Origin: Octopus sinensis
Lineage: Eukaryota
Length of the DNA: 64,000 nt
NCBI RefSeq assembly: GCF_006345805.1
Contig: NC_043006.1
Coordinates: 6,200,001-6,264,000, forward strand
Reading direction: 5' to 3'
Position numbers and translations under genes: made by a program. The notes beneath the pieces are model-generated. The model did no database searches. It saw nothing but the letters and a program-made list of their open reading frames with translations, and was not told the origin of the DNA. Shown piece after piece: positions 2,642 to 51,840 of the stretch (the stretch's first letter is position 1; each line of letters starts with the position of its first letter).

Positions 2642-2647
2642 TTTATT
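2642..2647 (-). terminator. Candidate polyadenylation signal AATAAA overlapping the stop of exon B
   Basis: Minus strand reads TAAATAAAA at 2649-2641. Confidence 0.45.
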
Positions 2648-2798
2648 TAATACTGCTTGCATGATTGGATTATATATGCTATTAAGCCTTCAAGTTCAGA
2701 TTTTTTTTTAATACCAGCAAATACCAGCCTCGTACCTGGGTAATACTGCTTTGGATTGTACAAAAACTTCCTGATTTCATCTTGATTGAGAATGCGAC
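2647..2798 (-). CDS. Cytochrome c-like terminal exon B (GRILNQDEIRKFLYNPKQYYPGTRLVFAGIKKKSELEGLIAYIIQSCKQY*)
   Basis: Acceptor aattattttag|GT in phase 1; 21/49 identical, ungapped, to cytochrome c exon 2; M80L, W59L, Y67F; intact frame. Confidence 0.9.
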
Positions 2799-2832
2799 CT
2801 AAAATAATTAAAATGATATGAATATATACATG

Positions 2833-2868
<36 letters not shown>

Positions 2869-2872
2869 CATG

Positions 2873-2921
<49 letters not shown>

Positions 2922-3013
2922 ATATATATATGTACATCAAATAAAATTAAAAACAGAACACAAAGGATATCGCGGTACACGTGTTTCAAGCTTTATAAAT
3001 AATCCGTTCTTAC

Positions 3014-3134
3014 ATCAGTGTATAATTGATATAAAATATGGTTTAAAGCTCTCTTCAGCCACACACATTGTTATTCCAAAGAGTACATGTAGTATTACCA
3101 TATATTGTCTTTCACCTCTGCCACTATCTGGCAT
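3014..3134 (-). pseudogene. Candidate N-half exon for copy B with in-frame TGA (MPDSGRGERQYMVILHVLFGITMCVAEESFKPYFISIIH*, then T|gt)
   Basis: Phase-1 donor T|gtaaga 215 nt above exon B. Ungapped 9/35 identity to gene A exon 3, with the same distance from GER to the splice. Confidence 0.45.
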
Positions 3135-3204
3135 ATACAGGTGCTTACACTTATCAAGTATTCACCCTAAATTTACAGTACCTATATATATATATATACT
3201 CTCT

Positions 3205-3610
3205 CTCTTTTACACACTTTTACTTGTTTCAGTCATTTGACTGCAGCCATGCTGGAACACCACCTTTAGTCGAGCGAATCGACCCCGGGACTCATTCTTT
3301 GTAAGCCCAGTACTTATTCTATCGGTCTCTTTTGCCGAACCGCTAGGTGACGGGGACGTAAACACACCAGCATCGGTTGTCAAGCAATGCTAGAGGGACA
3401 AACACACACACACAAACATATATATATATATATATATACATATATACAACCGGCTTCTTTCAGTTTCTGTCTACCAAATCCACTCACAAGGTATTGGTCG
3501 GCCTGGGGCTATAGCAGAAGACACTTGCCCAAGATGCCACGCAGTGGGACTGAACCCGGAACCATGTGGTTGGTAAACAAGCTACTTACCACACAGCCAC
3601 TCCTGCGTCT
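3205..3610 (-). mobile_element. SINE family A (tRNA-like head GGCGCAGGAGTGGCTGTGTGG, internal TA/CA microsatellite)
   Basis: About 400-bp repeat present many times in the window. Confidence 0.9.
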
Positions 3611-4379
3611 ATATATATACATACATACATACATGCATGCATGCACACACACATATTAGCAGAGATACCTGGTGTTACTCAGGATTAAAATAGTATAGTT
3701 ATTTATAGTTTTACTTGTTTCGGTCATGTGACTGCAGCCATGCTGGAGCACCACCTTTAGTCAAAGAAATCAACCTCAGGATTTATTCTTCGTAAGTACT
3801 TACTCTATTGGTGTGTTTTGCCAAACGGCTAAGTTACGGGGACACAAACACAGCAACATTGGTTGTCAAGCGATAGCAGGGGAAGAAACTGTGGTGCATG
3901 CGGGAAATTTGAAATAAGGACACCTCCCTCCTCTTCGTCGACCGAGACATCTCCAGTGGTAATGCACCCTTCCATGTGGCCTGACCCGAATGCTAGAAAT
4001 AGCAGCTGCTTTTCCCCTACCTTGATAAAGCGCTCACACGTCTAACTCTGTCGGCTTACCCCAATCGAAAGGCCAATGCTCCCCTGCCTGTGAGTGCGTC
4101 ACTCCTGCCCCTTCCTCTTCCGGTCAGCTCCCCAGCTGCTGACGTCATCCCACAGAAATAGAGACACACACACATACACATATATACACACACAGACACA
4201 TATATATATATAAAACTGAGAATTTGTGCCTGTCTATATGTATGTAGGTGTGCATCACTAAAACTGGAGAACTACCCAACAGATTTAATTCAAATTTCAC
4301 ACATGCCTTACTTAGGGTCCATGCAGTGTCAGTGTAGCAAAGACCAAAGTTCTAGTAAGTAGGAAGGCGAACTCATCAC

Positions 4380-4860
4380 ACACCTCCTCAGGCAGGTGGC
4401 CCTGCTTGATCTGTAGAAAAGGTGTAGGTAGAAACTCCATAAGATGTACCCAGTGTAAGCTATGGACACATAAGAGGTGCAGCAACATCAAAGGAAGATT
4501 AACTGAGAAGACAGCTTTTGTGTGCGGCAGATGCACAGGGACAATAAACACCACAGATGCTCAGAAAACAGATTCCATGACACTCCAGGGGAAGAAACTA
4601 GAAGTAGATAATAGCTTCCGCTACCTAGCTGACCAAGTTAGTAGTGGGGGGTGGATGCTCTGAGAACGTTACCACTAGAATAAGAATAGCCTGGGCAAAG
4701 TTTAGAAAGCTCCTACCCCTACTGGTGACAAAGGGCCTCTCGCTCAGTGTGAAAGGTAGATTGTATGATGCATGTGTGTGAACCACCATGCTTCACGGGA
4801 GTGAAACATGGGCCATGACTGCAGAGGACATGCGTAGCCTCGAAAGAAATGAAGCTAGTA
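4380..4860 (+). mobile_element. RTE-like LINE fragment
   Basis: [42 protein letters not shown]. Confidence 0.85.
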
Positions 4861-4922
4861 TGTATATATATGTGTATATATATATGTATGTATGTCTATG
4901 TATGAATGTATATGTATGTATG

Positions 4923-4969
<47 letters not shown>

Positions 4970-6179
4970 GTATATAATAATATAAAAAATATAAATATAT
5001 GCATATATACATACATATATGTACATACCTACATCTATATGTATATATATATACATGCATATATGGTTACAGGACATCAAAAAAACGTTGAACACAATGA
5101 AAAACGAAAACATGGAAACGAACTTTTTTCAAACAACAAAAAAACAGTGTACAAGACATACAACTCAAGGAATATTCCCCTTCTTCAGTTGTCCCTGTTT
5201 TGTCTACTCTGTGCTTCGAAGGTAAGGACAAGATGCGACTTCGTTGAAACAGTCCTTCCCGCAAAGCAAATTAAATAAAATTTGGAATTTTTTTGCAGAG
5301 GGGTAAAAGTGGTAAGAAGAACAGGACAGTAAGAACAAAACAAGACAGTAAAAACAGTAAAAGACAGAACAAAGAGAATAGCACAGTAAAAAAAATAAAC
5401 GATGTGGAAAAATTATTCTGGATGCTTGAGGAGACAGGATAAGCGGTCTTGTCTTGGTGAAGATAGCAGTTGGAAAGATGGCTTCCCACTAATCATGTGT
5501 CAGTGATGAGAGAGTCGAGGAGGAGGAGTAAGAGAGAGGGAATGGTGAAGGGGAGAGGAGAAGAATAGGCAAGTGTGGGAGAGAAAACCAGAAAGGATGA
5601 AGAACAAGAGGGGGAGAAAGATAGACAGAGGAGAAATAGTAAAAGTTGAAGAGTGCACATCATAATTATGAAGATAAAACTTACTTGGAAAAGGATGCGT
5701 GGCATTCGATCATATAATAATATAAATAATATATAAATATATGCATATATACATACATATATGTACATACTTACATCTATATGGATATATAGGTACCGGA
5801 CATCAAAAAAACGTTGAACACAATGAGAAACGAAAACATGATAACGAATTTTTTTAAAACAATGACAAAACAGAGTACAAGACATACAACACAAGGAATA
5901 TTCCCCTTCTTCAGTTGTCCCTGTTTCATCTACTCCGCGTTCCGAAGGTAAGGACAAGACATGACTTCGTTGAATATATATGTGTATATATGTGTGTGTA
6001 TATATATATGTGTATATATATATGTGTATATATGTGTGTATATGTGTGTATATATATGTATGTATATAAGTATGTGTGAGTGTGTGTATATATATATATT
6101 TATGTATATGTATATAATAGCCCTTATTGAAGAGATAGCCATAAAGATGCCAAAAGCTCAGGTAGATGAACTAGATGAG

Positions 6180-8772
6180 ACAGGTACTAGAAAAAGTGAA
6201 ACTTTCCGAACAAAGCATCACTAAGGAAGAAAAGTTCGCTATCAAAAGACTACAGAGTGAAAATTCCATCATAATACTTCCAGCGGACAAGGGAAATGCT
6301 ACAGTGGTGATGGACAAGTCTGACTACTCTGAAAAATTGGCAAGTATCATAAGTGATGGTAGCTACAGCAAAGAATAGAAAGACCCAACTCTCAAAAACA
6401 GAGAGGAAGTCACAGATCTTGATCAAGAACAAGGATCACTTTACACCAATGAAGTACTGACAACTGATTCAACACTTCAGTAAACTACCACACATGTACA
6501 GTCTCCCTAAGATTCACAAGGATGGTATTCCATTAAGACTTATAGTGAGCTGTAGAGGTTCAGCACGTCATCAACTGAGCCGCTTCCTTGTGGATATAAT
6601 CAGTCCATTAGCAGGAAAGTCAACATCGTACGTGAAGAATTCCACCCACTTCACAGAATTGATCAGAATTGAATCGAACCAGATGGTGAGTCTAGATGTG
6701 ATAAGTCTGTTCACCAAAGTCCCAACTGGTGAAGCACTATCGGTGATACAAGGAAAACTAGTGACAGACACCCATCTAAAAGAACACACTAGTATACCAA
6801 TAAGAAACTTGATAGAAATGTTGACCTTCTCTGTAGAAACTACCTACTTCAGTATGGACACTGATATATATCGACAAGAAGAGGGTTTAGCTAGAGGTTC
6901 GGCATTATCATCAATAATAGCCAATGTATTAAACGGAATACTTTGAGAATTTGGCTTTAGGATCAACACCACTAAAACCAACCCTATGCTGGGATATGTT
7001 GATAACACCTTTATACTCTGGCCCCACTAGGAAGATGTCCAAGTGCTGTTAGATCATGTATACTCAATAAAGCCATTCATAGAGTTCACAACGGAAAAGG
7101 CAAAAGACAATCAGCTGGCATTCCTGGACATATTAATAACATACACCAAGTATGGATTCAGGACATCAGTATACCGCAAGCCGACCTTCACTGGACGATA
7201 CTTTAACTTCAATTCCCACCATCCATACATTGTAAAGAGAAGGATTGCTCAGTGCCTGAAACATTGAGCAAAGAATATAAGTAGTGATAGTTGTATACAC
7301 CATGAAGAAATGATCAGGCTCATTAACAACTTATTGAGCAACAACTACCCCAAAAACATACTCTCCAATCCAATTATGAAGAAAAGAGAGGATGAAACCA
7401 ATAAACTGTCCACAGTCTGTCTAACCTTTGTGAAAGGCCTCTCCAAAATGATGCAAAAGCTATGTTGCCCATATGACATCAGGACAGTATTCAAGAGTAA
7501 TACAACACTTCACAAATATCTCCTTCGAGTAAAACCACCAATAGAAGAGAATATGACCAAAGACTGCATGTACTCCATCCCATGCAACTGTGGTAGGTTA
7601 TACAAAGGCGAAACATGCCGACCCCTCAAAATAAGGGTAGAGGAATATCGCAAAGCTGTGACACGAGGAGATATCAATATAGCTGATCATGTATGAAAAA
7701 ATGGAGACCAGCTCCCCCTGTGGGATGAAGTTTAAATAATAGAGAACACCACTGGAAAATACGAAAATACATATGCTAGGAGACAACAACCTCTAAGCAG
7801 ACTGAGTGCAGATATGAGTAGCATATGGGAACTGGTATTCAGGAAGGATAGGAAAATATTAGATTTATAAACCCTAAAATTCACTCCATTATTGCCCATG
7901 GGCATATGGCATGGTGGTTAAAAGTGTGGGCTACTAACCCCAAGGTTCCGAGTTCAATTCCAGGCAGTAAAAATGTCCGTTTTCCATGCTAGCATGGTTC
8001 TGGGAAGTCAGGAGACTGCACCAGGCTCTAGTCTGATCTGGCAGTGGTTTCTACAGCTGGGTGCCCTCCCTAATGCCAACCACTCCGTGAGTGTAATGGG
8101 AGCTTTTTATGTGCCAGCGGCACAGGGGCCAGAGAAGGCTGGCAACGGTCACGATCGGTTGGTGCATTTTACATGCCACCAGCACGGGTGTCACAACTGC
8201 AATTTCCATTTGATTTTCATTTTGAAGTTGATGTTGATGTACTTGACTCAATAGGTCTCCTCAAGCACAGCAGGTTGCCCAACGATCCAAGGTACTTTGA
8301 ATGAGCTGGGACTGGATATGCAAAACTGGTGTAGGATACAGTCATGAACTCACTTTATTTGCTGGGTCTTCGCAGTCACAGCATATCTCCTGAGGTCTTG
8401 GTCTTTCGTCATTGCCTCTGTGAGGCCCAATGTTTAAAGGTTATGCTTCATTACCTCATCCTATGTCTTCCTGGGTCTACCTCTACCCCAGATTCCTTCA
8501 ACTGTTTGGGAATGGCACTTCTTCACACAGCTCTCCTCATCCATCCGTAGTACATGACCATACCAGTGCAAACGTCTCTCTTGCATGACACATCCTGTGA
8601 CATCACAATTTTCTCTCACATGCTGTCTTGCAATCCAATCGAGAAATACCATAGGAATGAGAACCCAGGTTTGAAATTTCTGCAAGACACATGATGAAGG
8701 CTGGAGGGTATATCAGCCGAAACGTATTAACAAACAAGATGAGGACAAATATCCGTCAAATGTAAATAATGT
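6180..8772 (+). mobile_element. Penelope-like retroelement (RT + GIY-YIG), degraded, interrupted by SINE/RTE inserts at about 7970-8640
   Basis: YSLPKIHKDGIPLRLIVS, VSLDVISLFTKVP, QEEGLARGS, YSIPCNCGRLYKGET; many stops and frameshifts; tRNA-like segment at about 7895-7965 and a hammerhead-like 3' segment. Confidence 0.9.
8686..8730 (+). ncRNA. Degenerate hammerhead motif (Penelope terminal repeat)
   Basis: CATGATGA-AGGCTG-loop-CAGCC-GAAAC-GTA; one core mismatch. Confidence 0.4.
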
Positions 8773-8959
8773 TTACAGACAAGTTTTGTTGTTCACCAAC
8801 AGATGGCAGCACACAGTTGCATGTGCAGTGAGAGCTAGAAGTGACCTTCATGAGGCAGTGTGCCATGTGACATTGCTGTGTTTACTCCGCAAGCTGAAAT
8901 TTGCATTTTTGTGATCATCTGTAGGCTGTATTCTGCAATTTTGCCAAAGACTGGAGCAA

Positions 8960-9990
8960 AGAGCCAATGTGAAAGTTTGTGTTAAACTTGGGAAGTGTGC
9001 TACGGAGACATTGAGCATGCTTCAGCAAGCTTATGGCAATGAGGCAATGGGTTGTACACAATGTTTAGAGTGGCATGGGTACTTCAAAAGACACTTTGCC
9101 TCCCCAAAATCCATCCCCTCCTCACCGTGGTGGGGATGCTGGCAACGGGTAGTGTCAGAGCTATGCCGTCGGGAACTTCAGTTCCTGGTAGGGCCACCCA
9201 AGGTGGATTGGTCTGACACCGAGTGGTATTAGGGCCACAACCCGGCAAATCCTCGGTGAAATCCTCGGAGTGTCTGTTTCGGCAACCGGCGGCTCCTCGG
9301 TTGTTCTGTCACTGCATCTGTGGACAATCTGCAGCAAACAGGATGTCTCTACATGCGGGATTGTTGGGGACCACTTGTGAAATCCACATATTCCCACAAA
9401 ACTTCTTCCAAAGAAGAAGCCGATTCAACCCGCCCAGGGTGAATGTCGCCACAAGTACAAGAAATTCAAAAGTAGAAGAACATCCTGGGAAGATGATGAG
9501 CGATCTGGAAGACATGCAACAAGCGTCACCCCAGAAATGTGGTATTGTGCATCAAGAATTTGTCCAAGGCCAGACCATCGATCCTGAGTTCTACTGCAAT
9601 GGTTCCAAGCATCTGAGGGAGAACATTTGGCAAAAGCGACTGGATCTGTGGGACATGAATAATTGGATTCTTCATGTCAACAATGTACCCTGTCACTGAG
9701 TTCTCCTCACTCATGAGTTTCTCGCCCAAAACAACAGGGTATCACTTCCACACTCACCCTATTCACCAGATTTAGCACCTGTGGACTTCCGTCTCTTCTC
9801 GAAAATGATAATGCAGCTCAAAGGTCGCTGTTGTCAAGATCCAAGTGAATTGCAGAAGGTCCTCAACCCACTTGTGGAAAACGTCTTCCAGACCACAATC
9901 CAAAAGTGGCAAGAATGCTGGGACTGGTGTACTGTGGCACAAGATGTCTATTTAAAAGGAAATGATGTTAAAACTTACATAAATAGCTCA
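8960..9990 (+). mobile_element. Mariner transposase remnant with an unrelated insert at about 9090-9470
   Basis: KLGKCATETLSMLQQAYGNEAM (HTH), HQEFVQGQTI, WILHVNNVPCH, HSPYSPDLAP; disrupted frames. Confidence 0.9.
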
Positions 9991-10408
9991 TTTGTTTGAT
10001 TAAACATAACTAGTTTTGATAGGAACGTTTTGATACCTTTTTCTTTACTGCCCACAAGGGGCTAAACACAGAGAGGACAAACAAGGACAGACAAACGGAT
10101 TAAGTCGATTACATCGACCCCAGTGCATGATTGGTCCTTAATTTATCGACCCCGAAAGGATGAAAGGCAAAGTCGACCTCGGCGGAATTTGAACTCAGAA
10201 GGTAACGGCAGACGAAATACTGCTCAGCATTTCGCCTGGCGTGCTAGCATTTCTGCCAGCTCGCCGCCTTATGTTTTGATACCACCTTATAATATACCAT
10301 GGAAAAATTATTTTTTCTTCCGATCCTCAGAATTACTCAAATATGAAATCATATGATACTTACCATCTTTAAAGTCCTCAAAAGTTAATTTAAACCAAAC
10401 ATTTTGTA

Positions 10409-10557
10409 CTAATTCTCATTACATGCATGGGTCATATAAGCTATTAGCATATTAACATTATCTTTCTCCATACTAGCAACTTTTATCTTTGTAGAGGGTA
10501 AAACAGACTTTGGGCGATTCAAAAACTTCCTAAGTTCATCCTTTTTGTAAACATGAC
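10409..10557 (-). CDS. Gene A exon 4 (GHVYKKDELRKFLNRPKSVLPSTKIKVASMEKDNVNMLIAYMTHACNEN*); divergent cytochrome c C-half
   Basis: Acceptor ttcatttttag|GT in phase 1. Coding length 149 nt, the same as cytochrome c exon 2. Keeps PK, P-TK, LIAY and Cys102; about 18/50 identical to the 2647-2798 exon; Met80 position is Ile. Confidence 0.8.
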
Positions 10558-10605
10558 CTAAAAATGAATTTATATATAAATGTAAAGATTATATGTGCTC
10601 ATATA

Positions 10606-12251
10606 TTGGGTCATCCCATAAATAATGTGGGTTTTTTATATTTATTTTATTTTTCAAAATTAAGATAAACAAAGTTCTTTTTATAATCTAAAATATACTC
10701 TCCTTCCTTTTCTACAATGCTCTTCCATCTATCTGGTAGACTTGCAAGGCCCCTCTTTCAAAATTCACTTGTCTGTGATGAAAAATACTCTTCCAGTACT
10801 GCTCTGACCTCATCTACGGAATTCATACTTTTTCTGTCCAAATAATTTTGAAGACTGAAGAATAAATGTTAATCAGATGGAGCAATGTCCAGTGAATATG
10901 GTGGGTGGGGCAAAATAAGTTCATTCATGAGACTTGACAGCAAAGAAGAGCACACATTTGCTCTCTGCCCATGATTAGACTTGGAACCCATTGAGCCAAT
11001 TTGATGATTTTTCCAATAGCATGCAGGTATCAATGAAAGGTTGAATGGCTAAATCCAAGTTTCTTTGCTAGTTCCTCAATAGATACGACAGGATTTTGTT
11101 CCACCATGGGTTGCAGGACATCCTCACCGAGCTCTACAGATCTTCCAGGACATGGCTCGTCTCCTAAGCTGTAGTTTCTGGCTCAGAATTTCTGAAAACA
11201 CTCTCTCTTTCTCTTTTACTCTTTTACTTGTTTCAGTCATTTGACTGCGGCCATGCTGGAGCACCGCCTTTAGTCAAGCAAATCGACCCCGGGACTTATT
11301 CTTTGTAAGCCCAGTACGTATTCTATCAGTCTCTTTTGCCGAATCACTAAGTGACGGGGACGTAAACACACCAGCATCGGTTGTCAAGCAATGCTAGGGG
11401 GACAAACACACACACACACACACACATATATATACATATATATACATATATACGACAGGCTTTTTTCAGTTTCCATCTACCAAATCCACTCACAAGGCAT
11501 TGGTCGGCCTGGGGCTATAGCAGAAGACACTTGCCCAAGGTGCCACGCAGTGGGACTGAACCCGGAACCATGTGGTTGGTAAGCAAGCTACTTACCACAC
11601 AGCCACTCCTGCGCCACTGTTGACACTGGTTTACACTTATTGTCCCATCCTTGTATATCATCATCATCATCATCATCATCATCCAGTGTTTTAAATCTGG
11701 GTTTGCCCCCGTTAACAGGGGTGACCGGATCTACCTCAATGCCGTAGCAACCGAGGTAAGCAGGTGCAGCCCACCCCCAATCTTTGGGCTGGCTGGTACC
11801 CATTCTCCTTTGCTGTCATGAGGCTTTTTTTTTAGCTGGATTTTCTACAGGGATCATGCCCTTGCTTACCCCTAACCTCAGTTTATTAGACATGAGTGGT
11901 CTTGAGACCAAGGCCTCTGCCACAATTTTTTTAAAATGTAGTGGAAAACTAGCTCAGCAAGGCAGGGACCCTACTCCCTGAGACCCTTTTCAGAGCCCCC
12001 CCCCCTAATATACTGCATTAATATTCTTCACACTTTTCATAAAGCAAAATAAGCTGATTATGCTCCTTTGTCATTTCCATTAAAGCTTTGAAAAAATAAC
12101 CATAACTGCACTCTTCAAAACTTGCACTAAGAATAAGTACAAGGCAAGTAACTACCTGCTTTTATAGGAAGTTGACACAGTTTATCCTGTCCCCTTCAAC
12201 TCTTAGTTCATGCAATTGAAAAAAAAATGCATTATTTATGGGATGACCCAA
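10606..12251 (-). mobile_element. Mariner-like DNA transposon with TIRs and TA target duplication, carrying nested SINEs
   Basis: TTGGGTCATCCCATAAATAATG at 10606 and its reverse complement ending at 12251, TA on both sides; C-terminal transposase remnant LPDRWKSIVEKEGEY on the minus strand. Confidence 0.85.
11205..11615 (-). mobile_element. SINE family A
   Basis: Full-length copy nested in a mariner element. Confidence 0.9.
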
Positions 12252-14318
12252 TATATTGTTTATATCAATGCCTACTCCTTGGACCCAAGTCTTTAAGCCT
12301 TCCCAATAACTTATCTTTGTGACTTCCGTTCCTCCATCACACTTCTAACTATGGCATTATCTTCTTAGTTGCTGTAATTATATGAGAATAGAATTGCACA
12401 TATTTCATCCCTCATTTGTACTTTGGGCATTTCAAAAACGTCATTTGTACAAAATACGGCAGATATTGTATTCACCTCAATAGACGTCATTGATTGGTTA
12501 AAATTGCCGAAATGCAAGAAATTAAACAACAAATAGCTTACAAACTACAGAATTTTCTCAAGAAAGCCAAGAGAAAAAGATGTTTTATGTAACACATTCT
12601 ACCAGTATACGAAGTTAAAAAGTGTTTAGTTACAAAGAAATTATTTTTAAAATCTGCCAGTCAAAGTAAAAAGATCCTTTTTTTCCTATATTCACCTTCT
12701 TGTACACTGACAGTTCACTCTGACATGTCATTGACACCATTTCTAATTTCTTCCCAGCTAGTCCCTTCCACACCTTTATATAATGCAAAATTACCATGAA
12801 TCTCCCCTAAAGCAAACTACTTATGCTTGCCCCTCTATCATACTTTAGTCTTTTAACACCTGGCATAAAACCACTGGTCCCACTGTCAATACACTCCCAT
12901 TCAGGTAACGGGTCTTAAACTTTTTTTAAGTTACTTGCTGACCTCACAAGTACCAGTGTGTTATACACAAAAACACGAAAAACTCCTAATGCACATTGTA
13001 ATGTGGTAGGGATTAAAAAAGGCATTCCGCCACAGAAACCAATCTAAAATAAATACTGGAACTTGAAACAGCCCTGCAGCTAATCTGGAACTCGACTGAG
13101 GAAAGAAAACTCCGAATGACCCATCCTTGTTTTCTTTGTATCGTCTATCTGGATGTTTTGTTGTCCCTTTTTTATGTCACCTAACTGTCTGGAGGCTGCA
13201 CCAGGCTCCAATCTGATCTGGCAGAGTTTCTACAGCTGGATGCCCTTCCTAACGCCAACCACTCCGTGAGTGTAGTGGGTGCTTTTTACATGCCACCAGC
13301 TCAGGTGCCAGGGGAGTCTGGCAGCAGTCACGATCAGTTGGTGGTTTTTACGTGCCACCGGCATAGAAGCCAGTCAAGGCGGCACTGGCATCGGCCACGT
13401 TATATATATAGATATATAATTGCAAAGATAATCTGGAACTCAACTGAGGAAAGAAAACTCCGAATGACCCATCCTTGTTTTCTTTGTATCACCTGTCTGG
13501 ATGTTTTGTTGTCCCCTTTCTTGTATCACCTAACTGTCTGGAAGTTTTGCGTTCTTGTCCCATTTTGTATTTTTTATATATAAAAACATTGCGGCGTACG
13601 TACACTTTGGTCTCTTATATGTAATTATATACATATGTCTAATTTATGTACAACTCTATTATTCTTTCTATTCTTTCATTCTTTCTGTCAGCCCTTTCAG
13701 ACCTTCTTCATTCATTCCACTCTTCATTTTTCGTTTCCCCCTCTCTCACATTTCCTGACCTTCTCTTCAAGCTCACTTTCCCTCCTCTTTTCATTTCACT
13801 GTGTCCCTTTCATTTTTTTCACCCCTCTTAATTCTTCTATCCCTCTACCTCTACCTCTCACTCTACTCTCCCCACGTAACTAGTGTTTGGCCAAGCCTGA
13901 CCTTTCTTTCTTGGTTCGACTACCATCCATGCAACATCTATATTCCTCCCTCTGCCTGCCAAATCTTATGTGCCTGTCATAAGGCTTTACTTACCCACAC
14001 ACCAGCTTAATTTAATTTGTCCTTAGTCGAAAGACACCTGTTGTTATGTCCTGTTACATGCATTCGTATTTGTGTAACATTTCTCCAGTTTTTTTTCTGT
14101 CCTTGTTTCCATATACATTCGCTGCTTTCTTCCAAGGAATCTAATGCTCTTACCTTTTTTTTTCTTGGGGCTGGCCAAATTGGAGCAATCTCAAGTATAA
14201 CCAGCCAAAATTGCAAAGATAATCTGGAATTCAACTGAGGAAAGAAAACTCCGAATGACCCGTCCTTGTGTTCTTTGTATCGTCTGTCTGGATGTTTTGT
14301 GTTCTTGTCCCATTTTTG

Positions 14319-14354
<36 letters not shown>

Positions 14355-14985
14355 AGATAGGGGTTGAAAATTCAACCCACCATGGGATAATATATATCCA
14401 ATATACTGCCAGATAGGTACCCAACAAGATTAATACATCTATTGTATTATATGGGTAAAGGTAATAATATTACCGTAAATCAATACTACAAAATTAGAGA
14501 ATGGAGAAACATACTTAAATCAATAAAACATCAACTATCCGATGATACCCAATCAATACTTTAATACACCATTACATATGAGTAAAGGCATTATACAAAA
14601 TGAGATATACAGTAATAGTAAAAAGATAAAGAGATATAAGTAAAAAATTTCAAATATAATATGCATACTGTATATCTCATTTTGTATAATGCCTTTACTC
14701 ACATGTAATGGTGTATTAAAGTATTGATTGGGTATCATCGGATAGTTGATGTTTTATTGATTTAAGTATGTTTCTCCATTCTCTAATTTTGTAGTATATA
14801 TATATATATATGTACTTGTGATATTTTTCTGTATTTACCTCCAAACCTTCGTGAGCTGTCTGGAGTAAACATTATCTGAGAGAAATTTTCTTTAAGTAGT
14901 AGAAATAGCTAAAAAAATTTTTTTTGGCTGATATTTCTACTAAGTTCAGTATGTGGCAAAGTAATTTATTTTACTAAGCCCTAAT

Positions 14986-15016
<31 letters not shown>

Positions 15017-15936
15017 CAGGGTGTGATGGGTAAATTGTTACTATTTTTAATTTTATGCATGGGCATTGTCTGTTTTTGATTTTATCAACTACACAGTATT
15101 GTAGGGTTGGTTGGGGACTGTCTGTGAGAAAAACAGCATCATGACACAATTCACTCTACTAGATATTTGGAAACAACATGCTGTACTGTTTGGCGTTCAC
15201 ACCAGAAGCAACGATACATACAGATGGTGCACACACAGTACAAGCATTGGTTTGCCATGTCCTCAAAACATGAACTGAGAGTGATAAAAACCAAACAACC
15301 AGTCAACATCATGGTGTTTGGAGCGATCACTCATGATGGCGATGTTATGCCTCCATTCATCTTCCTACATGGGCTCACACTTAACACGGAGGCCTTCATC
15401 AAGTGCCTGGAGGAGGTAGTGTTACCCTGGGTCAAGAGGGTGGCTGCTGGAAGACCCTATGTCTGGCAACAGGATTCTGCACCATGCCACACAAGCAGGA
15501 GAACCCAGTGATGGTTGTCAGACAACTTCTGCGACCACATCACCCTTAAGATCTGGCCACTTAACTCCCCTGAATGGAACCCTCTTGATTATAAGGTGTG
15601 GAGCGCAGCTGAGCTAGAGACCAACAAAACTCCTTATAATACTGAAGATGAACTGAAAGCAAGGATTATGGTGGCATTCACCATCCAGAAGAGTTGCAGG
15701 AGATTCTGAAGTCATCTGAAGGCTATGGTTGACGCCAATGGCAATTTTATTGAATAAATTTACATTTTAGTATTTCAAAATACTTTTATCTAATTTTGGT
15801 AAATATATCTGTTAATATGAGATAATTTGATTGATTTGATCTAGTTTAAGCTCATGAGCTGTGGTCATGCTGGGGCAGTCAGTGTTATTTTCATTTTTAT
15901 GTAATTTAGACGACTGTATATTCACCGCACCCTGTA
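15017..15936 (+). mobile_element. Tc1/mariner DD37D (maT-type) transposon remnant inserted in (TA)n
   Basis: Ends CAGGGTG...CACCCTG flanked by TA; MVFGAI...WQQDSAPCH...WPLNSPEWNPLDY with 37 residues between the last two Asp; internal stop. Confidence 0.85.
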
Positions 15937-15960
15937 TTTATATATATATATTTATATATA

Positions 15961-16039
<79 letters not shown>

Positions 16040-17803
16040 ATATATACATATACAGGGTAGCAAATATTCGTTATAAATATCACCACCTGTAGCCCAGCAT
16101 GTATAAATAGTCAATAGACGACATATTCATATTTTAAAATAGTGTACATTTAAACACAAAAGAAAACTACCCTTTAACAGGTAATTTTTACATGCTAGAA
16201 ATAGCAGCCAACATGGCCAAAACCCCGATTTAATAGCAATTTTCGAAGTAAATGAAAAATAAAAACTTTTACCTTGTTATTTTTATTAGCGGTTATACCA
16301 TGGTTTCAAATTTCTTTAGCAAATAGGATTATTTGCCATCCTTTAATAGGTAATTTTGCAAAACAATATTATCCGCCAGGCAAATTCTCGTCAATAACCG
16401 GCTTTAATAACTAACTTATAATTCAGAAACAAGATAACACGTGTCCTGTCATTGTAATAATAATAATATACATTGATCTCTATTTTTGTTAGCAGTTGTA
16501 TGTTGTATGTCGATATGTTTGCATGCAGTGTAAATTAACGAAATAGAAGCAAATTGTAAATACTTTGCAACTGCTGCAATAATTATGAAATGTTGAATGA
16601 ACATTAGAGATGTATATAACTTGGGCCTTCCACGTAATTGTTTTTTGTCAAGAGTTTCACCTCCAGCTGTTCTCCAGCTGTATATGTGGTGATGTATGTG
16701 CGCGTTTAGTAACATACGTAACAGGCACACAAACACACTCACAGGCACACATTCATATACATATAGTAAGAGAGACACATACAGACATACATTCACGCAT
16801 GTCAGTTGTCACATGTGTATATCTATGTATAGATGTGTGTGTGTGTGTTTAATAATGTACTTAATGCGGAAACACGCACACAGTCAGAGAAACTTACACA
16901 CTCATACACCCACACACGTACATTCAGGACACATGCACACTCATATATGTGACATTGTTGTCGTGATATAAAACGTCCTTTACTATTTCATACGTATTGA
17001 ACACGCAAGCACACACACATAAAGTGAAACAAGTCTTATTACATTAGAATTAAAAGTGAAAGAATAAAGTGCAACAATATTATTTCACACGAAGAAGTTA
17101 ATTTGTAGACAGAAATTACAAACCCCATTTCAGCAAATTAACTGTAGAAGAAAATGGGCTGAGTGAACAAACTTGAGCCACTTTAGGATATCTTTTTCTA
17201 ATGCATGAATACTCAGTGGCATGGTTGAATTCCCATTGGTTAGTAATGAAGGCTTATCTGCTGTATCACAACAGTTTTCAATAGAGAGAGAAATGTAAAT
17301 AGTGTATTTAAATAGACAGAGTGCAAAAAATTTTTAATAAGTAATGTTGTAGGGAGAACATGCAAACAGCATGACGGCAAAGATATTTACACATGACAGA
17401 GAAAGAAGAATTGCAGAGGATGTAAGTGAGAAAGAGAAGAGAAACAGAGAAAGAATCATTTGATCACTGCAGAAGTCAAAGGGAGAGAATCGGTTGAAAA
17501 CTGCAGTTTTTACAGAAAAACCCATGTGAAAAACCAGGTCAGTTTCTCGCATTACATGGGAGCTCAGGGCAAAATATAGTCCATGACTATCCTTGGCATA
17601 TAAGTAATATGTGTATAAAGTTTGGTAAAAATTGGTTGAAAACTGTAGAAATGCATACGTATTACACACACACACATATGCACACAGACACGTCCTTTGT
17701 TTTTTATATATAGATGTCAAAAATTATTGATATAGAAAAATAGTAGAATGTTCTAAACAAATACAAACTTCTGACTAAAATTTCCAAATTAAAGAATAAT
17801 TAC

Positions 17804-17934
17804 CCATGTGTGCCTCATCTATGATATTCATCAAGCCAACATCTTCATCCTTCTCACTACATATAATCAGTAGATATCGGCCTAAACGTTTATATATTCT
17901 CTCACCAGCTCTAAGATTGATTCTCAAATTTCTC
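17804..17934 (-). CDS. Gene A exon 3, 131 nt (RNLRINLRAGERIYKRLGRYLLIICSEKDEDVGLMNIIDEAHM + G); degenerate cytochrome c N-half
   Basis: Acceptor tctacattttag|, donor G|gtaatt, only one frame open. AGERIYK resembles the N-helix motif GKxIF; ends in a split Gly codon like the cytochrome c exon. Confidence 0.75.
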
Positions 17935-18583
17935 CTAAAATGTAGATAATGGATAACAAAAGTGAGGACATACATTAAACTTAAAATAAAGAGTATCTTT
18001 AAAAACTATTTGCAAAATAAAAACAAACTGAAATTGTATTAAAATTGTATTGAATATAATATTGAGTAATTTCTCAACAGCATTTCCATATAACTTGTGA
18101 TTTATTCCAGCAGCCCTTCTTATAAATGTGAAGCAAGATGGTTTATCTTAATTTTCTACTACATAAAAAATGACTTACTTTATATCTCATATTTTATATT
18201 CAAATATTCTGAAATTAGTTTTTTTTTTTTGTAGGTGTGGGCTAGAGACGGAGACAGAGAGAAACACAGCATCTATAGATAGCAAGACAGACAGATAGAA
18301 AGGCAGTCAGGTTATTCAAAAGTAACACATTTTAAAGAATCCTTTCTAAAATTAAACCTACACAAGCATTTGTAAAAGGTCTTCTGTAGGAAAGACTAGG
18401 ACATTCCTAAATGTCAGAATAGAAAAACATGGGAAGCCTTAATGAGAGGAGAAACGTTTAAGTCAGGAATAGCTGAATGTACTTTTTTTAAAAAAGTCCA
18501 TTTCTAAAAATTAAGTTAAAAATCTGGAAAATTATCTCCCTTTTTTTAAAAGCGTATTAAAGTTATTGTCATCTTCAAATCTC

Positions 18584-18902
18584 TCTATATATAAAGCTGA
18601 AGTTGTCTGTGTATGGCACTTTGGTAGCCTTCAACTAACACTATCTCCCCCGAGACCCTGCAGTGCAAGTTGACCAAAATTGAGAGTATGTTAACACCAA
18701 AAATTACTTACATCAAAAAGGTGCTTTTTTTCTATGAAAACCCCTATTTTTTACGATTTTTTGACTGCTGTGTCACCATTTTTCAGTGTATTTCAACCAG
18801 AAAAATGTTCACTTAAAGAGAATAACAAGCTACATAATGCCAAATTTTTACTTTTCGAAAATTCCAATTCTAAAGGGTCAAAACAAAACCGAGCAATGCT
18901 AG
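18584..18902 (+). mobile_element. Non-autonomous Helitron-like element
   Basis: 5' TCTATATATAAA, 3' CCGAGCAATG...CTAG; second copy in the opposite orientation at 45096-45483. Confidence 0.6.
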
Positions 18903-18966
18903 TATATTATACAATTGTTCAAATATAAAATTGTAATCTTCAGAGCTTAAAAATTTTATTTCTTAC

Positions 18967-19021
18967 GGTCGTATTGCTCTCTTAAAAATGGTGTTTCCAT
19001 CTGCAGTTCCCAAACAGGTAT
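18967..19021 (-). CDS. Gene A exon 2, 55 nt ((D)TCLGTADGNTIFKRAIR(P))
   Basis: Acceptor ttgctacttcag|, donor CC|gtaaga. The phase 1-in/phase 2-out frame is open and matches both neighbouring exons. Confidence 0.7.
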
Positions 19022-21289
19022 CTGAAGTAGCAATAAGATGAGAAAATTTGAATTATTATCATATCAAAGACAGGAATGTTTTCTTTTATTACATCATGGT
19101 AGCATCATTGATTAGTAGAATTTAACGGTGATGAAATTCTTGCAAAACATTTTGTTTTGAATAGACAAAAAGCCATCTTTTATTGAAGCAGAGACAATTC
19201 ACTGAAGGATGTTATATTAAGGGTGCAAAGCAAATTAACTTTTGTTACCAAAATAATAATTAGAAAGTCTCGGTATTCTAATGTTAAAACAGATATTTTC
19301 CATTTTGTTGTTGAAATAATGTAAATGCATATATTTTGGAAAATGTAATAACATGAAAGATATTGTTACATTAATTGTTTGTTAAATACATATAAGATAT
19401 GTTACTGAGTGTCACGAGTCAAAAACTCGAACCATTGACGTGGTAACTATGTCATTACTCAACCTGCTGCAAATAACAACCAAATGCCTCCCAAATCACA
19501 TTCTACTATTTTTTAAAAAGGAAGGAAACACTGGATGACATGGTCAAGATACATTGTGGTTGAATATACCATTGATGATTACAGTTGAGTCATCTTTGAT
19601 CATAAATCTGCTCAATCAATGAGAATACAACAAATTAAAACTGTAACAAGATGAAAGGTCTGTAACATTGGGGGGGGGCAGCTTTCATCCCCTTACATTA
19701 AATTATTTATCGAAGGAAAAGCCAAGACTTCCGAATATCTTCAAACAGAATAAAATATTTTAATTTCTGAATTCGCAGTATCATCATCATCGTCATCATC
19801 ATCATCATCATCATCATCGTTTAACGCCCGTTTTCCATACTAGTATGGGTTGGACGATTTGACAGGGGTCTGGGAAGCCAGGAGGCTGCACCAGGCTCCA
19901 GTCTGATCTGGCAATGTTTCTACGGCTGGATGCCCTTCCTAATGCCAACCACTCCATGTGTGTAGTGGGTGCTTTTTACGTGCCACCAACATGGAAGCCA
20001 GTCAAGGCGGCGCTGGCATGCATTTCTTTCAGGTTGAATCTGTAGCCTAGGAACTAGTCGCAGTGGTCAAATGGAGCGAACCAAATCCTGTCTCGTTCCA
20101 GCATAGTGTAGCATCGCCACATGGTGGCAGCTAAAACATGTCCTTTCCGTTTGACTGTCAGCTTCGAGAAAGGGAAATTTTGCTGCTGCTAGTTCTCTGC
20201 ACATGTGCATGAGGGAACTTCCGGCAAGCCGCCCGGAAGAAATCCAACTCTGTGCATGTGTGCTGAAGACTTCCAAAATGGTGTCACTACAAAACTAAAA
20301 AGTGGTTTTGTTGAATTTTACTCTAAATTTATTTTTCATTAAAAAATGGATATGATACATGAAACTTTTATTTAAATGTATTAGAAATTAAAACTTATCA
20401 AAGCTTAAAACTAAGTTGGCCTGCAGTATTCCAGATGATTCAACATCTCCATTCTTACACACATCTCCTTAACATATGTACCCAGAATTCATCCATCAGA
20501 ACCATAAGATTTAATTCAAAAATGACCTTGACCCCAATAATAGAATTCTTTTCTTCTTATACTACACTAACATTATATTTTTTTTTTCCCTTTTTTTTTT
20601 ATTAAAAGTACTTTATTTATTTATTTATTACCCACAGGGGAGCTAAACATAGAGGAGACAAACAAGGGCAGACAAAGGGATTAAGTTGATTACATCAACC
20701 TCCATTACATCACTGGTACTTATTTAATCGCTTCTGAAAGGATGAAAGGCAAAGTCGACCTTGGTGGAATTTGAACTCAGAACGTAGCGGCAGACGAAAT
20801 ACTTATTTCTTTACTTCCCACAGGGGGCTAAACACAGAGGGGACAAACAAGGACAAATGGATTAAGTCAATTATATCGACCCCAGTGTGTAACTGGTACT
20901 TATTTAATCGATCCTGAAAGGATGAAAGGCAAAGTCGACCTTGGCAGAATTTGAACTCAGAACGTAGTGGCAGATGAAATACCGCTAAGCATTTTGCCAG
21001 GCATGTTAACGATTCTGCCAAACTCACCAACTTATTTAAAATACTTATTGAACTAATATTTATCAATGCAGACCACAATCCTCCTTTCTATAATGGTGTA
21101 GCAGTTGGCACTGCTTCTGGGAATTTCTTTTTTAATGTCTATATATGGAAAATTTTTATTTTCGCATATAACATATAAACATGTACGTCTTTTAGAACTT
21201 TGTCATTTTATAAGATTTTGCTGACAAATTTTAAAATTAACATAAGCATGTATTTACGTCAAAACCATTTGTGCGCAAATTTTTTTATC

Positions 21290-23045
21290 ACAGCAACTAG
21301 TCACACACCACAAGGTTTAATGGAAACCACTGAAGCAACCCAGCATGCTTGCAGCATTACCATAGGTGATGGCGAGGCTTAGGCATTGAGAAAGCCAAGC
21401 ACCTTCATGGGCATCACCTGGCACCTCGCTGAGGCAAGCTACCAATATTGACAAGAACTCTGCAGTTAGTGGCCCAGTCCCTCCAAACGTCTCAAATGCC
21501 ACAGGTTGGAAGAGATAGTTCGCTGTTAGATCCTGATACTTCAGAATTTTCTTCCATTTGGCTATGGAAGCAGTGACCCTCCCATTAACTGCAGCATCCA
21601 GGATGTGGGAGGGAGAAAAGGAGTCACAGACTGTGGCATCCCAAATGAGGCATCTACCTCTAACCCAGGGACAGAGGATAAGACCATCTGGCCTCTTTCC
21701 ATCACTTCTGGATAACCCTGACAGCTCCAGAACTGAGGGGATATTAATCCGAGCCAGGATCGGCTTAAGGATTAGGGTTTAGCTTGGTGTGACAAGTGAA
21801 GTGACCAGCATTTAGGTGGCAAGACAGACCTTAAAGACCTGTTGGGTTGAGGGGCCTACCACAGCGGCATCCGAGTCCCCTACAGACGTCAGCTCCCACT
21901 CTGAGTGTGATGGAGATGCAGAGATCATCTGGACAGACTGAGTAGACCTCCAATGTTGGCCATTGGCAGGTCGTCAATCCAGTCCCCTGAGAATTTTGCC
22001 CTATTACAAGGAGAGAGCTGAAAGTGGCACTTGAATGCAGACTGTCCCATACTCTCTGTTTCTGTCTATCCTCCACTGTAACCAGAACTGACAAACCCAG
22101 CTCTCTCCACTGTAATAGAGCTTAATCCATCTCTCTGTTGGAATTAGTCCATGCTGGAGAGGTGAGGATGTTGCCTTCTAAAGAGGAGCAAGTGTGGGTG
22201 GAGGAAAGACAACAGGGAAGATATAAAGATGAGCACTTGCGCAGACCTAGACCCCCAAACCATTTGGGCAAAGCAGCTTGGTTGTGGGAGTCTGGAGAGA
22301 GTTTGACATTGACCAAGCATTCAAGTTTCCTGAAGATTAGGTCATCAAAGTATTGAAGGGACAACAGGAATCTGTAAGAGGGTCCAACTCTCAGAAAATA
22401 CAATAGCTTAGGAATTGACAAGTAATTCCTAAGTACCAAAAGATCTTGGTGGGGCTCACTTACTTCAAGGCTTTTAAAAGTTGTTCAAGGTTTTTCATTT
22501 TGGATTTAAAGATGGACTTGAAAGCTAGGTCAGTAATTAGAGCTCTAAGGGAGCACCATGCTGATGAAGAAGGAATTGCTATTGAGGGGAAAGAGTCAAC
22601 AAATAGTTTAGTAGTCTGCTCATGCAAAGCTGGGCGGTTGAAGCACCAGAGCTTGCATTTGGAGCTGTTAACACTAAGACCCCTATGACCAAGTTCCTCA
22701 ATCATTGTCCTCACAGTTGCAAGTACCTTGTCAGGAGGGCCTCCCAAAGAAGCATCATCGAGGTGCCAGACATTTAGGTCAAGGTCGGCTCCCATCGAGG
22801 TAACATCATTAATACCCAATGCGAATTGGGCAGGACCAAGTGGATCACCCTGTTAGACTGCAGAAGCAGATGGAGTCTAGCAGGGCTCCTGATAGGCTTG
22901 CCAAGCAAAGTGATAAAGTGGTGGGGAATTTTCCCTTACTGTGTGGAGGATGATGTCTCGACTGATGGAGTTAAAAGCAACTTAAGGTCAAGCTTGAGGA
23001 TGACCTTTGGGGACTCAGAGGGCAAGTTGGTGAAAGCCCTGGTGG
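21290..23045 (-). mobile_element. CRE-clade non-LTR retrotransposon fragment (RT + restriction-like endonuclease)
   Basis: GDPLGPAQFALGI, WHLDDASLGG, GGLGLR, CRCG zinc knuckle, DGKRPDG...PW...WDATV, FQPVAFETFGG; lies in the first coding intron of gene A. Confidence 0.8.
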
Positions 23046-23121
23046 CATAAAACAGTTATCAATTAAAGAGTTATCAACTGCTCTTCCATATGGATGCTGT
23101 CACTTGAACAATTCAACTTAA

Positions 23122-23341
23122 CCCTTTAGTGTTTAAACCGGCTATATCCGGCCCAAATAGTCTACTCATTTTATGCTCAAACTGGCCAGAACCAGTATCT
23201 CACACCTACCCTGCAATGTCATTCTAAAAATAAACAATTACATCTTTCAAATCTTGAAGCTACAAGATAATACCAGATTAATTTTTTTAAATGTAAATGA
23301 ATAAGGATTACTTCTGACATATTAATTTGAACACTAAAGGG
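23122..23341. mobile_element. piggyBac-like MITE
   Basis: TTAA-CCCTTTAGTGTT...AACACTAAAGGG-TTAA. Confidence 0.75.
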
Positions 23342-23529
23342 TTAAATTATAATGTCAACCAATAAATTTTATAAATTTAGACAAGTTTGTCTACTATAGA
23401 GAGACAAGATAATTGATTTTTTGAGCAAAACCATTGGTCTTTGAAAAAAAAAACAAGTTTGTAAATGTTTATAATAAAACTGAGAATATAACATTCAATA
23501 ACTCTATCACAGAAACTTTATCTACTGCT

Positions 23530-24285
23530 AAACAAACTCCACCTGTCTAACACCCGTGGACATGTTTACAAAGTCAGAAAACAGCACAGCTCCTTCCATG
23601 ACTTTCGGAAACATTTTTTCACGCTAAGAGTTGCTGAAGCATGGAACAAACTGCCGGCATCAGTTGTTAGTTGTTGGAGCACTGCATCCTTCAAAACTTC
23701 CATGCTTCCTGAGATTTGCCCACACTACACCTGATTTTCTCCCTTCCATACACACGCAAGCATCTATCTGACTCATACACTGTTCACTTCCCAGACATTT
23801 GTACATTACTGTATATGCTTTATACGCACTTTTGACAAGTTGTGGTGCACCTGAGCACTGTATACAATAATTTCATTATTATTATTATTATTATTATTAT
23901 TACTAACAATAACTCTGAGTACCTTTTCAAACTCCACCTGTCTAACACTCGTGGAGATGTTTACAAAGTCAGAAAACAGCACAGCTCCTATTAATTTCGA
24001 AAAAAGTTTTTTCACGCTAAGAGTTGCTGAAATATGGAACAAACTGCCGGCATCAGTTGTTAGTTGTCAGAGCACTGCATCCTTCGAAACTTCCATGCTT
24101 CCTGAGATTCGCCAACACTACACCTGATCTTTCTCCCTTCCATACACACGCAAGCATGTATCTGACTCATACACTGTTCACTTCCCAGACATTTGTACAT
24201 TACTGCATATGTTTTATACGCACTTTTGACAAGTTGTGGTGCACCTGAGCACTGTATACAATAATTTCATTATTATTATTATTAA
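23530..24285 (+). mobile_element. Two tandem CR1/L2-type LINE 3' ends with (ATT)n tails
   Basis: TRGHVYKVRKQHS...FFTLRVAEAWNKLP repeated at about 23530-23900 and 23925-24285. Confidence 0.85.
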
Positions 24286-24308
24286 ATACTTGTATTATAG
24301 TTACTTAC

Positions 24309-24357
24309 CAAAATTTATAACCATGCAGAGAAATACTGCCAAAACAATGAGCTTCAT
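24309..24357 (-). CDS. Gene A exon 1: signal-peptide exon (MKLIVLAVFLCMVINF + G) of a cytochrome c-derived secreted protein
   Basis: Acceptor ttctgttttag|GACATC-ATG (A at -3); basic n-region plus hydrophobic h-region; strong phase-1 donor G|gtaagt. Confidence 0.75.
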
Positions 24358-24845: not shown

Positions 24846-25100
24846 AAAAAGAATAAAAATGTCTTATGAAAGAATAAATCAATGAATTTCTTTTAAAACA
24901 TTGATTGCAAACTTTGGTACAAGGCCAGCAGTTTCAGGGGAGGTAGGAAGTCAATTACGTTGACCCCCAGTACTCAACTGGTGCTTATTTTATCGGCCCC
25001 AGAGGGATTAAAGGCTGAGTTGACCTTGGTGGAATTTGAATTCAGAGTGTAAAAGACAGACTAAATGTTAAGTATTTTGCCCAGCATGCTAATGATTCTT

Positions 25101-51691: not shown

Positions 51692-51840
51692 TTATGATTT
51701 ACAGCATTCTTCCAGATAGGCTATAACATCGGCTCGTTCTTTTTCTTTCTTAATACCTGCAAATATCATCTTTGTGCCAGGAATGTATTCCTTGGGATTC
51801 TTTAGATAAATAAAAAGAGTCTCCCTTGTCCAAGTAATAC
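51692..51840 (-). CDS. CYCS: Cytochrome c, coding exon 2 ([49 protein letters not shown])
   Basis: Acceptor tattttccag|GT in phase 1; W59, Y67, PGTKM80, FAG motifs; TAA stop. 181+149 = 330 nt = 109 aa; intron 2291 nt. Confidence 0.97.

Follow-up and report, generated by a model that had tools for sequence, protein, structure and literature searches.

The subject of this analysis is a stretch of 64,000 nucleotides from Octopus sinensis (contig NC_043006.1, positions 6,200,001 to 6,264,000; the window in what follows) and in particular one of its exons, here called 2c, which encodes the C-terminal half of a cytochrome c. This exon is the last coding exon of isoform X1 of LOC115216643, a paralogue of cytochrome c which follows the canonical gene in tandem, at a distance of about 27 kb downstream. 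The best explanation, to which a probability of about 0.7 is assigned, is that LOC115216643 is a haem-less, leader-bearing tandem paralogue of cytochrome c, with a product which would be secreted and free of haem and a surface which would be under diversifying pressure. An earlier note on the same DNA had taken 2c for an orphan exon awaiting a partner with the haem-binding motif CXXCH. This view had to be given up, as 2c proved to be exon 4 of LOC115216643 with three upstream exons of its own. These three exons, the location of 2c on the minus strand and a second copy of the exon (2b, 10557..10409) had been left out of that note.

The exon and the hexamer at its end are the following:
2647..2798, minus strand: exon 2c, terminal coding exon of LOC115216643 isoform X1, 152 nucleotides, intact, phase 1
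2642..2647, minus strand: AATAAA hexamer, read directly, which shares one base with the TAA stop of 2c, the last of the codon

The acceptor ttttag|GT donates the last two bases of a split glycine codon. The minus strand reads ttttag|GT CGC ATT CTC ... CAG TAT TAA, and the translation (minus strand, 2647-2796) is (G)RILNQDEIRKFLYNPKQYYPGTRLVFAGIKKKSELEGLIAYIIQSCKQY, followed by the stop at 2649..2647. In the numbering of horse cytochrome c the exon carries leucine 59, phenylalanine 67 and leucine 80, the last encoded by CTG, so that translation and numbering bear out the description of an intact exon with the replacements W59L, Y67F and M80L. The match of horse cytochrome c to 2c in a tblastn search of the window is far beyond chance (E = 2.7e-11). 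The overlap of AATAAA with the stop, also noticed before, was found again on reading 2647..2642; the hexamer is kept in O. bimaculoides and may be the poly(A) signal. Leucine 80 is genuine and not an assembly error, because the window is identical base for base to O. sinensis CM016868.1 across the 21.7 kb of the gene and because the independent O. vulgaris assembly yields the identical 2c peptide (CAI9728440.1). A word-indexed search with the 50 amino acids of the 2c peptide alone gave no match, an absence not counted as evidence since the index overlooks even relatives which share words with the query. A long (TA)n/(TG)n microsatellite at 2800-2935, which cannot be aligned with O. bimaculoides, lies upstream of the short unique stretch preceding the 2c acceptor.

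LOC115216643 consists of the four coding exons A-B-C-2c and of a duplicated terminal exon, 2b, which yields isoform X2. Exons A and B were located upstream of exon C by weak similarity and splice sites, exon 2b by tblastn and splice context, and the two canonical exons by tblastn:
24309..24357, minus strand: exon A, start codon and hydrophobic signal-peptide-like segment MKLIVLAVFLCMVINF, donor G|gtaagt
18967..19021, minus strand: exon B, encoding (D)TCLGTADGNTIFKRAIR(P)
17804..17934, minus strand: exon C, encoding (P)RNLRINLRAGERIYKRLGRYLLIICSEKDEDVGLMNIIDEAHM(G), homologous to about residues 18-56 of cytochrome c, without CXXCH and without histidine 18
10409..10557, minus strand: exon 2b, paralogous terminal exon of isoform X2
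54132..54312, minus strand: coding exon 1 of the canonical cytochrome c gene (MPIPAGD...CAQCH...NKNK), the parent gene
51692..51840, minus strand: canonical coding exon 2 (2a), with W59, Y67 and M80 intact

When exons A, B, C and 2c were spliced by hand, a protein of 128 amino acids was obtained which exactly matches XP_029641992.1/XP_036362165.1, annotated as "cytochrome c isoform X1 [Octopus sinensis]". Splicing of A, B, C and 2b yielded 127 amino acids and an exact match to XP_036362166.1, "uncharacterized protein LOC115216643 isoform X2". The annotated span of the gene, 24357..2647, coincides with the start codon and the stop of the hand-built model; no other gene is called within it, and the next one, CNOT9, is on the opposite strand. 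The exact match to isoform X1 and the coinciding span identify 2c as the terminal exon of an annotated gene distinct from the canonical one. Exon A is preceded by an acceptor (ttttag|GACATC ATG), so a further exon with 5' untranslated region is expected upstream. Exon C ends with the donor G|gtaatt in phase 1, as in the canonical gene, and the N-terminal half of a protein from Argonauta hians (P0025) matched the window at 17993..17799 in tblastn (E = 3e-9), ending at this phase-1 donor at 17804. Exon 2b encodes (G)HVYKKDELRKFLNRPKSVLPSTKIKVASMEKDNVNMLIAYMTHACNEN and a stop; it has isoleucine at position 80 and a deletion of one codon and is more diverged than 2c. Derived states in common to 2b and 2c are DE[LI]RKFL, phenylalanine 67 and the loss of tryptophan 59 and methionine 80, and their similarity extends about 140 nucleotides beyond the stop.

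Four candidate donors for 2c had been proposed earlier, at 3014, 10364, 17804 and 54132. Among these 17804, the donor of exon C, is the true partner, while a pairing with the canonical donor at 54132 is unsupported, the fusions not being on record. Such a pairing would turn 2c into an alternative last exon of canonical cytochrome c and its product into a haem protein with leucine 80, binding ligands or acting as a peroxidase. Canonical exon 1 does end in the same phase as exon C (AAA G|gt), which would allow splicing to 2c in frame, and the canonical gene and the paralogue share a strand, with no further gene called in the interval. However, the fusions of exon 1 with 2c and with 2b are absent among 15 billion proteins, where both products of A, B and C are present; 2c comes with a start codon and promoter-proximal exons of its own, which lie 27 kb past the canonical stop; and position 80 varies freely between methionine, leucine, isoleucine and valine, which is unexpected for a residue facing haem. 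This explanation is thus very improbable.

Some further features were observed in and around LOC115216643. A donor-like site GATG|GTAAGT at 10358-10370 on the minus strand (donor 10364), 45 nucleotides past the 2b stop, is kept in O. bimaculoides and destroyed in the homologous flank of 2c. As this conserved site follows 2b, the exon may sometimes be internal, with an intron in the 3' untranslated region and a premature stop. At 1938-2000 on the minus strand lies the orthologue of the terminal exon of O. bimaculoides isoform X3 (GRTTTRRLLLNPFTMDIFEEF); it contains two in-frame stops in O. sinensis, and this coding end is thus not conserved. Upstream of the exon C acceptor the reading frame of the exon continues without a stop for 24 codons (17935-18005, minus strand, FLKILFILSLMYVLTFVIHYLHF), a stretch with a weak resemblance to the Argonauta leader. 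Its counterpart in Argonauta has a stop, and the stretch may be either an intron segment open by chance or what is left of an earlier N-terminus. Translation from an ATG in this open frame before exon C (MYVLTF...) was rejected, its product not being on record and the stretch being intronic, as was the Argonauta upstream exon MTLLMDSG..., which has no counterpart within the window. A unit of 184 bp is repeated four times just upstream of exon A (25100-25835), where O. bimaculoides has a similar stretch of about 180 bp, and a unit of 394 bp is repeated 1.9 times just inside the first intron (23533-24284).

The relation of the gene to cytochrome c does not depend on 2c alone. Exons B, C and 2b/2c are collinear with cytochrome c, and the phase-1 G|GT junction at glycine 56 is common to the paralogue and the canonical gene. 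By this collinear homology and by the same position and phase of the intron LOC115216643 shares its descent with cytochrome c. Alignment of the family to cytochrome c with hhalign gave a probability of 98.5% and E = 1.5e-15 over 94 columns, placing family residues 24-127 on cytochrome c residues 10-109, and MAFFT independently yielded the same placement of the CXXCH site. In both alignments GNTIFKRAIRPR of exon B aligns with the N-helix segment of cytochrome c, from which it follows that the intron between B and C sits inside the former haem-binding motif. A first alignment, with AGERIYKRL of exon C on the N-helix, needed a deletion of 16 residues and was discarded, as hhalign and MAFFT put exon B there. 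A profile search of the PDB returned only cytochromes c, for residues 65-122, with 2aiu, a vertebrate testis cytochrome c, as the best match. In Pfam no family was matched by P0161, P0025 or P0160 at E <= 1. The positions invariant in the family include G6, F10 (as tyrosine), L68, P71, K72, P76, T78, A96 and Y97 of the cytochrome c core, a pattern which fits a retained helical scaffold, and two cysteines, Cys60 and Cys125, are invariant as well.

The haem site itself has been lost. Instead of CAQCH the sequence AIRPR is found in O. sinensis, ATQQR in O. bimaculoides and AVQDG in Argonauta, and CXXCH is absent from every family protein. With AIRPR in the place of CAQCH no haem can attach, in line with the earlier conclusion that the exon does not serve electron transfer. 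For the same reason the analogy drawn there to Met80 mutants of cytochrome c, which show peroxidase activity or bind NO and CO, does not apply to a family without CXXCH and histidine 18, and the RefSeq name "cytochrome c isoform X1" is a misnomer, as this product cannot be a cytochrome. Nor is the replacement of methionine 80 the defining event it was thought to be. Position 80 is methionine in all canonical exons, isoleucine in 2b of both Octopus species, and valine or leucine in the Argonauta copies. In 2c it is leucine in O. sinensis and O. vulgaris, and the O. bimaculoides orthologue keeps methionine (ATG ATA, as in the canonical exon). As the loss of CXXCH is common to Octopus and Argonauta, M80L must be a recent change in a protein which had long been without haem. 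Gene conversion of O. bimaculoides 2c from the canonical exon was considered as a source of its methionine and rejected; the flanking codons are not canonical-like and the derived states number 6 versus 7 between the species.

Members of this cytochrome c-like family were found by profile search only in octopods, namely in O. sinensis, O. vulgaris (CAI9728440/1), O. bimaculoides and Argonauta hians. Beyond the family the search reached ordinary cytochromes c at E of about 1e-6 with their C-terminal third only. In O. bimaculoides the gene is LOC106871044, in which isoform X1 corresponds to the 2c orthologue, X2 to the 2b orthologue and X3 to another terminal exon; in its locus (L003) the order A-B-C-2b-2c-CNOT9 is preserved, as is every AG/GT site. 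From Argonauta hians two models are annotated (GAB1601166-7). The best single-domain match to the 2c peptide in an exhaustive HMMER search was a "cytochrome c-like" protein of 131 amino acids from this species (P0025), which shares the derived states of 2c, has leucine at position 80 and contains no CXXCH in its N-terminal half. At the Argonauta locus (L002 10000-33099 and L001, BAAFZT010000018.1) three units of about 10 kb lie in tandem after the canonical gene and comprise 5' exons and four open copies of exon 2; the leader exons are identical between the units, whereas exons C and 2 differ. In a model of 188 amino acids (P0160) the 5' exons come from unit A and are joined to unit B's second copy of exon 2, so that a whole unit is skipped. 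The tandem arrangement of canonical gene and paralogue is common to Octopus and Argonauta. The four-exon structure with intron phases 1, 2, 1 and the signal-like first exon are likewise common to O. sinensis, O. bimaculoides and Argonauta, and O. vulgaris has this gene structure as well. No stop or frameshift occurs in any of the eight exon-2 copies, and all their AG/GT sites are kept.

Rates of change were compared between O. sinensis and O. bimaculoides. Nonsynonymous (dN) and synonymous (dS) divergence were calculated by the NG86 method with the following results:
Exons A+B (33 codons): dN 0.013, dS 0.154, dN/dS 0.08
Exon C: dN 0.187, dS 0.145, dN/dS 1.29
Exon 2c: dN 0.176, dS 0.175, dN/dS 1.00
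Exon 2b: dN 0.266, dS 0.149, dN/dS 1.78

The 33 codons of exons A and B, which cover the signal and the N-helix, hardly change at the amino acid level. The ratio of 1.00 for 2c does not agree with purifying selection for the fold, which had been suggested before. Amino acid identity is 98% for canonical exon 2, 69% for 2c and 56% for 2b, so that the paralogue diverges by 31-44% as compared to 2% in the canonical exon. At the nucleotide level exon C differs by 13.4%, 2b by 19.5% and 2c by 15.1%, while 736 of 9879 sites (7.5%) differ in orthologous non-coding DNA of the same locus. The pace of change in the cytochrome-like exons is thus 2-2.6 times that of the non-coding DNA around them (combined odds ratio 2.4, p = 4.6e-9). 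The mature region carries 61.5 nonsynonymous changes versus 25 expected at the non-coding rate (P = 9e-10), with a dN of 0.18-0.27 versus a non-coding divergence K of 0.078. The flanks adjoining the exons are 93-95% identical, those 3' of 2b and 2c about 94%. When unit C of Argonauta is compared with units A and B, non-coding DNA differs by 1.3-1.7%, exons C and 2 differ by 8-11% and the two leader exons show no difference. A control within the block yielded an exon excess of about 2-3-fold with marginal significance. A conserved signal region followed by a mature region which evolves faster than non-coding DNA is the pattern of fast-evolving secreted effector genes. Diversifying selection on the mature region is the best, though not a proven, reading of these rates.

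The same figures bear on the explanation that the paralogue is a relic, which has lost its function and drifts, 2c being a pseudo-exon that gene predictors still join to the others. A dN/dS of 1.00 for 2c is the number named earlier as the mark of a simple pseudo-exon, and together with the 1.29 of exon C it is what a relic would show; in addition no Pfam domain is recognised, the structure models are of low confidence, run-level assembled copies are not on record, and the extra terminal exon of O. bimaculoides (X3) is broken by stops in O. sinensis. But neutral drift predicts a divergence of 7.5%, the non-coding rate, and 13-20% are observed, 2c diverging twice as fast as its flanking non-coding DNA. 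Exons A and B have a dN/dS of 0.08, the 3' flanks of 2b and 2c are conserved to about 94%, the core residues are fixed and the two cysteines invariant. Frames and AG/GT sites are kept in O. sinensis, O. vulgaris, O. bimaculoides and four Argonauta copies; by substitutions alone a neutral exon so diverged from the canonical sequence keeps an open frame about 7-8% of the time, and eight copies are open. Because of a divergence of 2c at twice the non-coding rate, the frames and splice sites kept in four species and the constraint on the signal exon region, the simple pseudo-exon reading fails, and a relic in the wider sense is unlikely.

That the product is secreted is suggested by its N-terminus, where the mean Kyte-Doolittle hydropathy of residues 3-16 is 2.95 versus -0.06 in canonical cytochrome c. 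A site with small residues at Ala23 is aligned in both genera, with alanine at -1 and with glycine in Octopus and valine in Argonauta at -3. The product is basic, with an isoelectric point (pI) of 9-9.6. A membrane-anchored or lumenal intracellular protein could have the same features: the hydrophobic N-terminus, compatible with a signal anchor, would hold it in place and the surface of cytochrome c (K72 and the 70s loop) would serve as a decoy or adaptor for partners. P71, K72, P76 and T78 of the partner-binding 70s loop are indeed invariant, and charge and pI are cytochrome-like. The partners of cytochrome c, however, reside in the intermembrane space or the cytosol and not in the secretory pathway, the rapid divergence of the remaining surface argues against a conserved partner, and the small-residue site at Ala23 points to cleavage, as read from the sequence. 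An anchored protein is thus a rather improbable outcome.

For the favoured explanation, a haem-less secreted paralogue, the course of events may have been as follows. A tandem copy of the cytochrome c gene has lost the haem-binding site and gained a new hydrophobic first exon. The leader would act as a cleaved signal peptide, with cleavage near Ala23, where the homology to cytochrome c starts. The product would enter the secretory pathway, meet no haem lyase there and carry no haem. Its folding, if any, would occur around the retained core of N-helix, 60s-helix and C-helix, perhaps with a disulphide between Cys60 and Cys125. The mature product would be a small basic secreted protein of about 105 residues acting outside the cell, and pressure from an external partner, for example prey, pathogen or mate, might keep its surface changing, as in toxins, antimicrobial or reproductive proteins. 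It is possible, and put forward tentatively, that octopods have in this way recruited cytochrome c as the scaffold of a secreted, haem-free and rapidly diversifying protein family serving venom or saliva, immunity or reproduction. Features of this family are alternative terminal exons, annotated in two Octopus species, and tandem gene amplification in Argonauta.

Several points weigh against this explanation. The dN/dS of 1.0-1.8 in the mature region is not significantly above 1, with few sites to count. Synonymous divergence of the exons (0.14) is also above the non-coding rate (P = 0.03), and a mutational process focused on the exons or undetected gene conversion could therefore contribute. 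The exon excess in Argonauta drops to p = 0.04-0.4 once the less-diverged 5' region is set aside, a region possibly homogenised by conversion or duplicated more recently. The signal peptide was called by eye and hydropathy and not by a dedicated predictor, and a membrane anchor would look alike. The models in RefSeq and GenBank may in part be predictions, and the run-level assemblies in which no copy of the family proteins is on record are those of Logan. AlphaFold2 models calculated from two alignments were weak, with a mean predicted local distance difference test (pLDDT) of 46 and 54 and only residues 81-128 at pLDDT 60-79. In these poor models only the part encoded by 2c resembles cytochrome c, the best Foldseek match being human cytochrome c (45 columns, root mean square deviation 2.4 A, E = 0.1). 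For the helices a retained cytochrome c fold is plausible on these models.

Few proteins are as conserved or as thoroughly studied as cytochrome c, and in its apo-form it is the textbook case of a protein which does not fold without haem. With the canonical mitochondrial protein of the PF00034 family (XP_029642027.1) the paralogue shares collinearity over about 94 residues, the phase-1 intron at glycine 56, size and basic charge. It differs in the absence of CXXCH and histidine 18, in a variable position 80 and in falling below the Pfam threshold, and its gene has gained a signal-like exon as well as an intron within what used to be the haem motif. Testis cytochrome c of vertebrates and cyt-c-d of Drosophila are diverged duplicates as well, presumably specialised, which keep CXXCH, histidine 18 and methionine 80 and stay mitochondrial. 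They resemble the octopod paralogue as duplicates of the cytochrome c gene with diverged sequence; the octopod paralogue, in contrast, has lost CXXCH, histidine 18 and a constant methionine 80 and has a secretory-type N-terminus. Leucine in place of methionine 80 within a recognisable 70s loop, as in 2c, also occurs in "cytochrome c-like" sequences of koala (P0197) and Tupaia (P0216), which read PGTKLIFAG. These are near-canonical and have no signal exon, added introns or conservation across genera; they may derive from processed pseudogenes. In the octopod gene introns, splice sites and open frames are kept in four species.

The mode of evolution is closer to that of conotoxin superfamilies and snake-venom phospholipase A2, in which a conserved signal precedes a hypervariable mature region diverging faster than introns and untranslated regions. 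The octopod gene has a comparable conserved leader, fast mature exons, tandem amplification (in Argonauta) and exon duplication. Unlike these toxins it would be built on a scaffold derived from cytochrome c, and it has two conserved cysteines only. As the gene models are already in RefSeq and GenBank, the exon itself is no discovery. Literature searches yielded no description of the gene or of a cephalopod cytochrome c-like protein, nor of a cytochrome c turned into an extracellular effector, and no account seems to exist of a cytochrome c paralogue which lacks haem, bears a leader and evolves rapidly. If the explanation is true, a haem-less paralogue kept across the divergence of Octopus and Argonauta would be a natural experiment on the cytochrome c scaffold without its cofactor and a pointer to an unrecognised family of secreted proteins in octopods.

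The remaining content of the window was also surveyed. The spliced canonical product is XP_029642027.1 of Octopus sinensis, which matches PF00034 at 56.1 bits with a cut-off of 21.3 (P0001). The tblastn search with horse cytochrome c detected four pieces, canonical exon 1, 2a, 2b and 2c, all on the minus strand; 2a, 2b and 2c all begin with AG|GT in phase 1 and are open to a stop at the homologous place. The window contains only one cytochrome-type CXXCH exon, the canonical one at 54312..54132 and about 51 kb upstream of 2c, in agreement between tblastn, a six-frame pattern scan and the earlier note. Other CXXCH matches lie within a repeated element, dispersed at 3526, 11532, 27351 and 56337 on the plus strand and at 44437 and 57002 on the minus strand, which accounts for most of the spurious matches in the window. 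Its frame reads ...HSQG[IF]GRP[GEK]AI[AV]E[DG]TCP[RS]CH[AS]VGLNPE[PL]..., and it is probably an element resembling a short interspersed nuclear element (SINE). A Pfam scan of the nine longest open reading frames of the window gave no domains. Exons of WDR24 were looked for and none were found in the window; this gene clusters with cytochrome c only through a fused O. vulgaris model of 880 amino acids (CAI9728438.1, P0003), which joins WDR24 to a complete canonical cytochrome c within one 90% cluster and probably results from read-through or a mis-join. Two large arrays of a 21-bp unit, with about 92 and 115 copies, are located at 32013-33921 and 39041-41438, in the interval from the canonical gene to the paralogue. 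Their consensus units are seemingly reverse complements when compared by eye, and they look like inverted minisatellite arrays about 5 kb apart.

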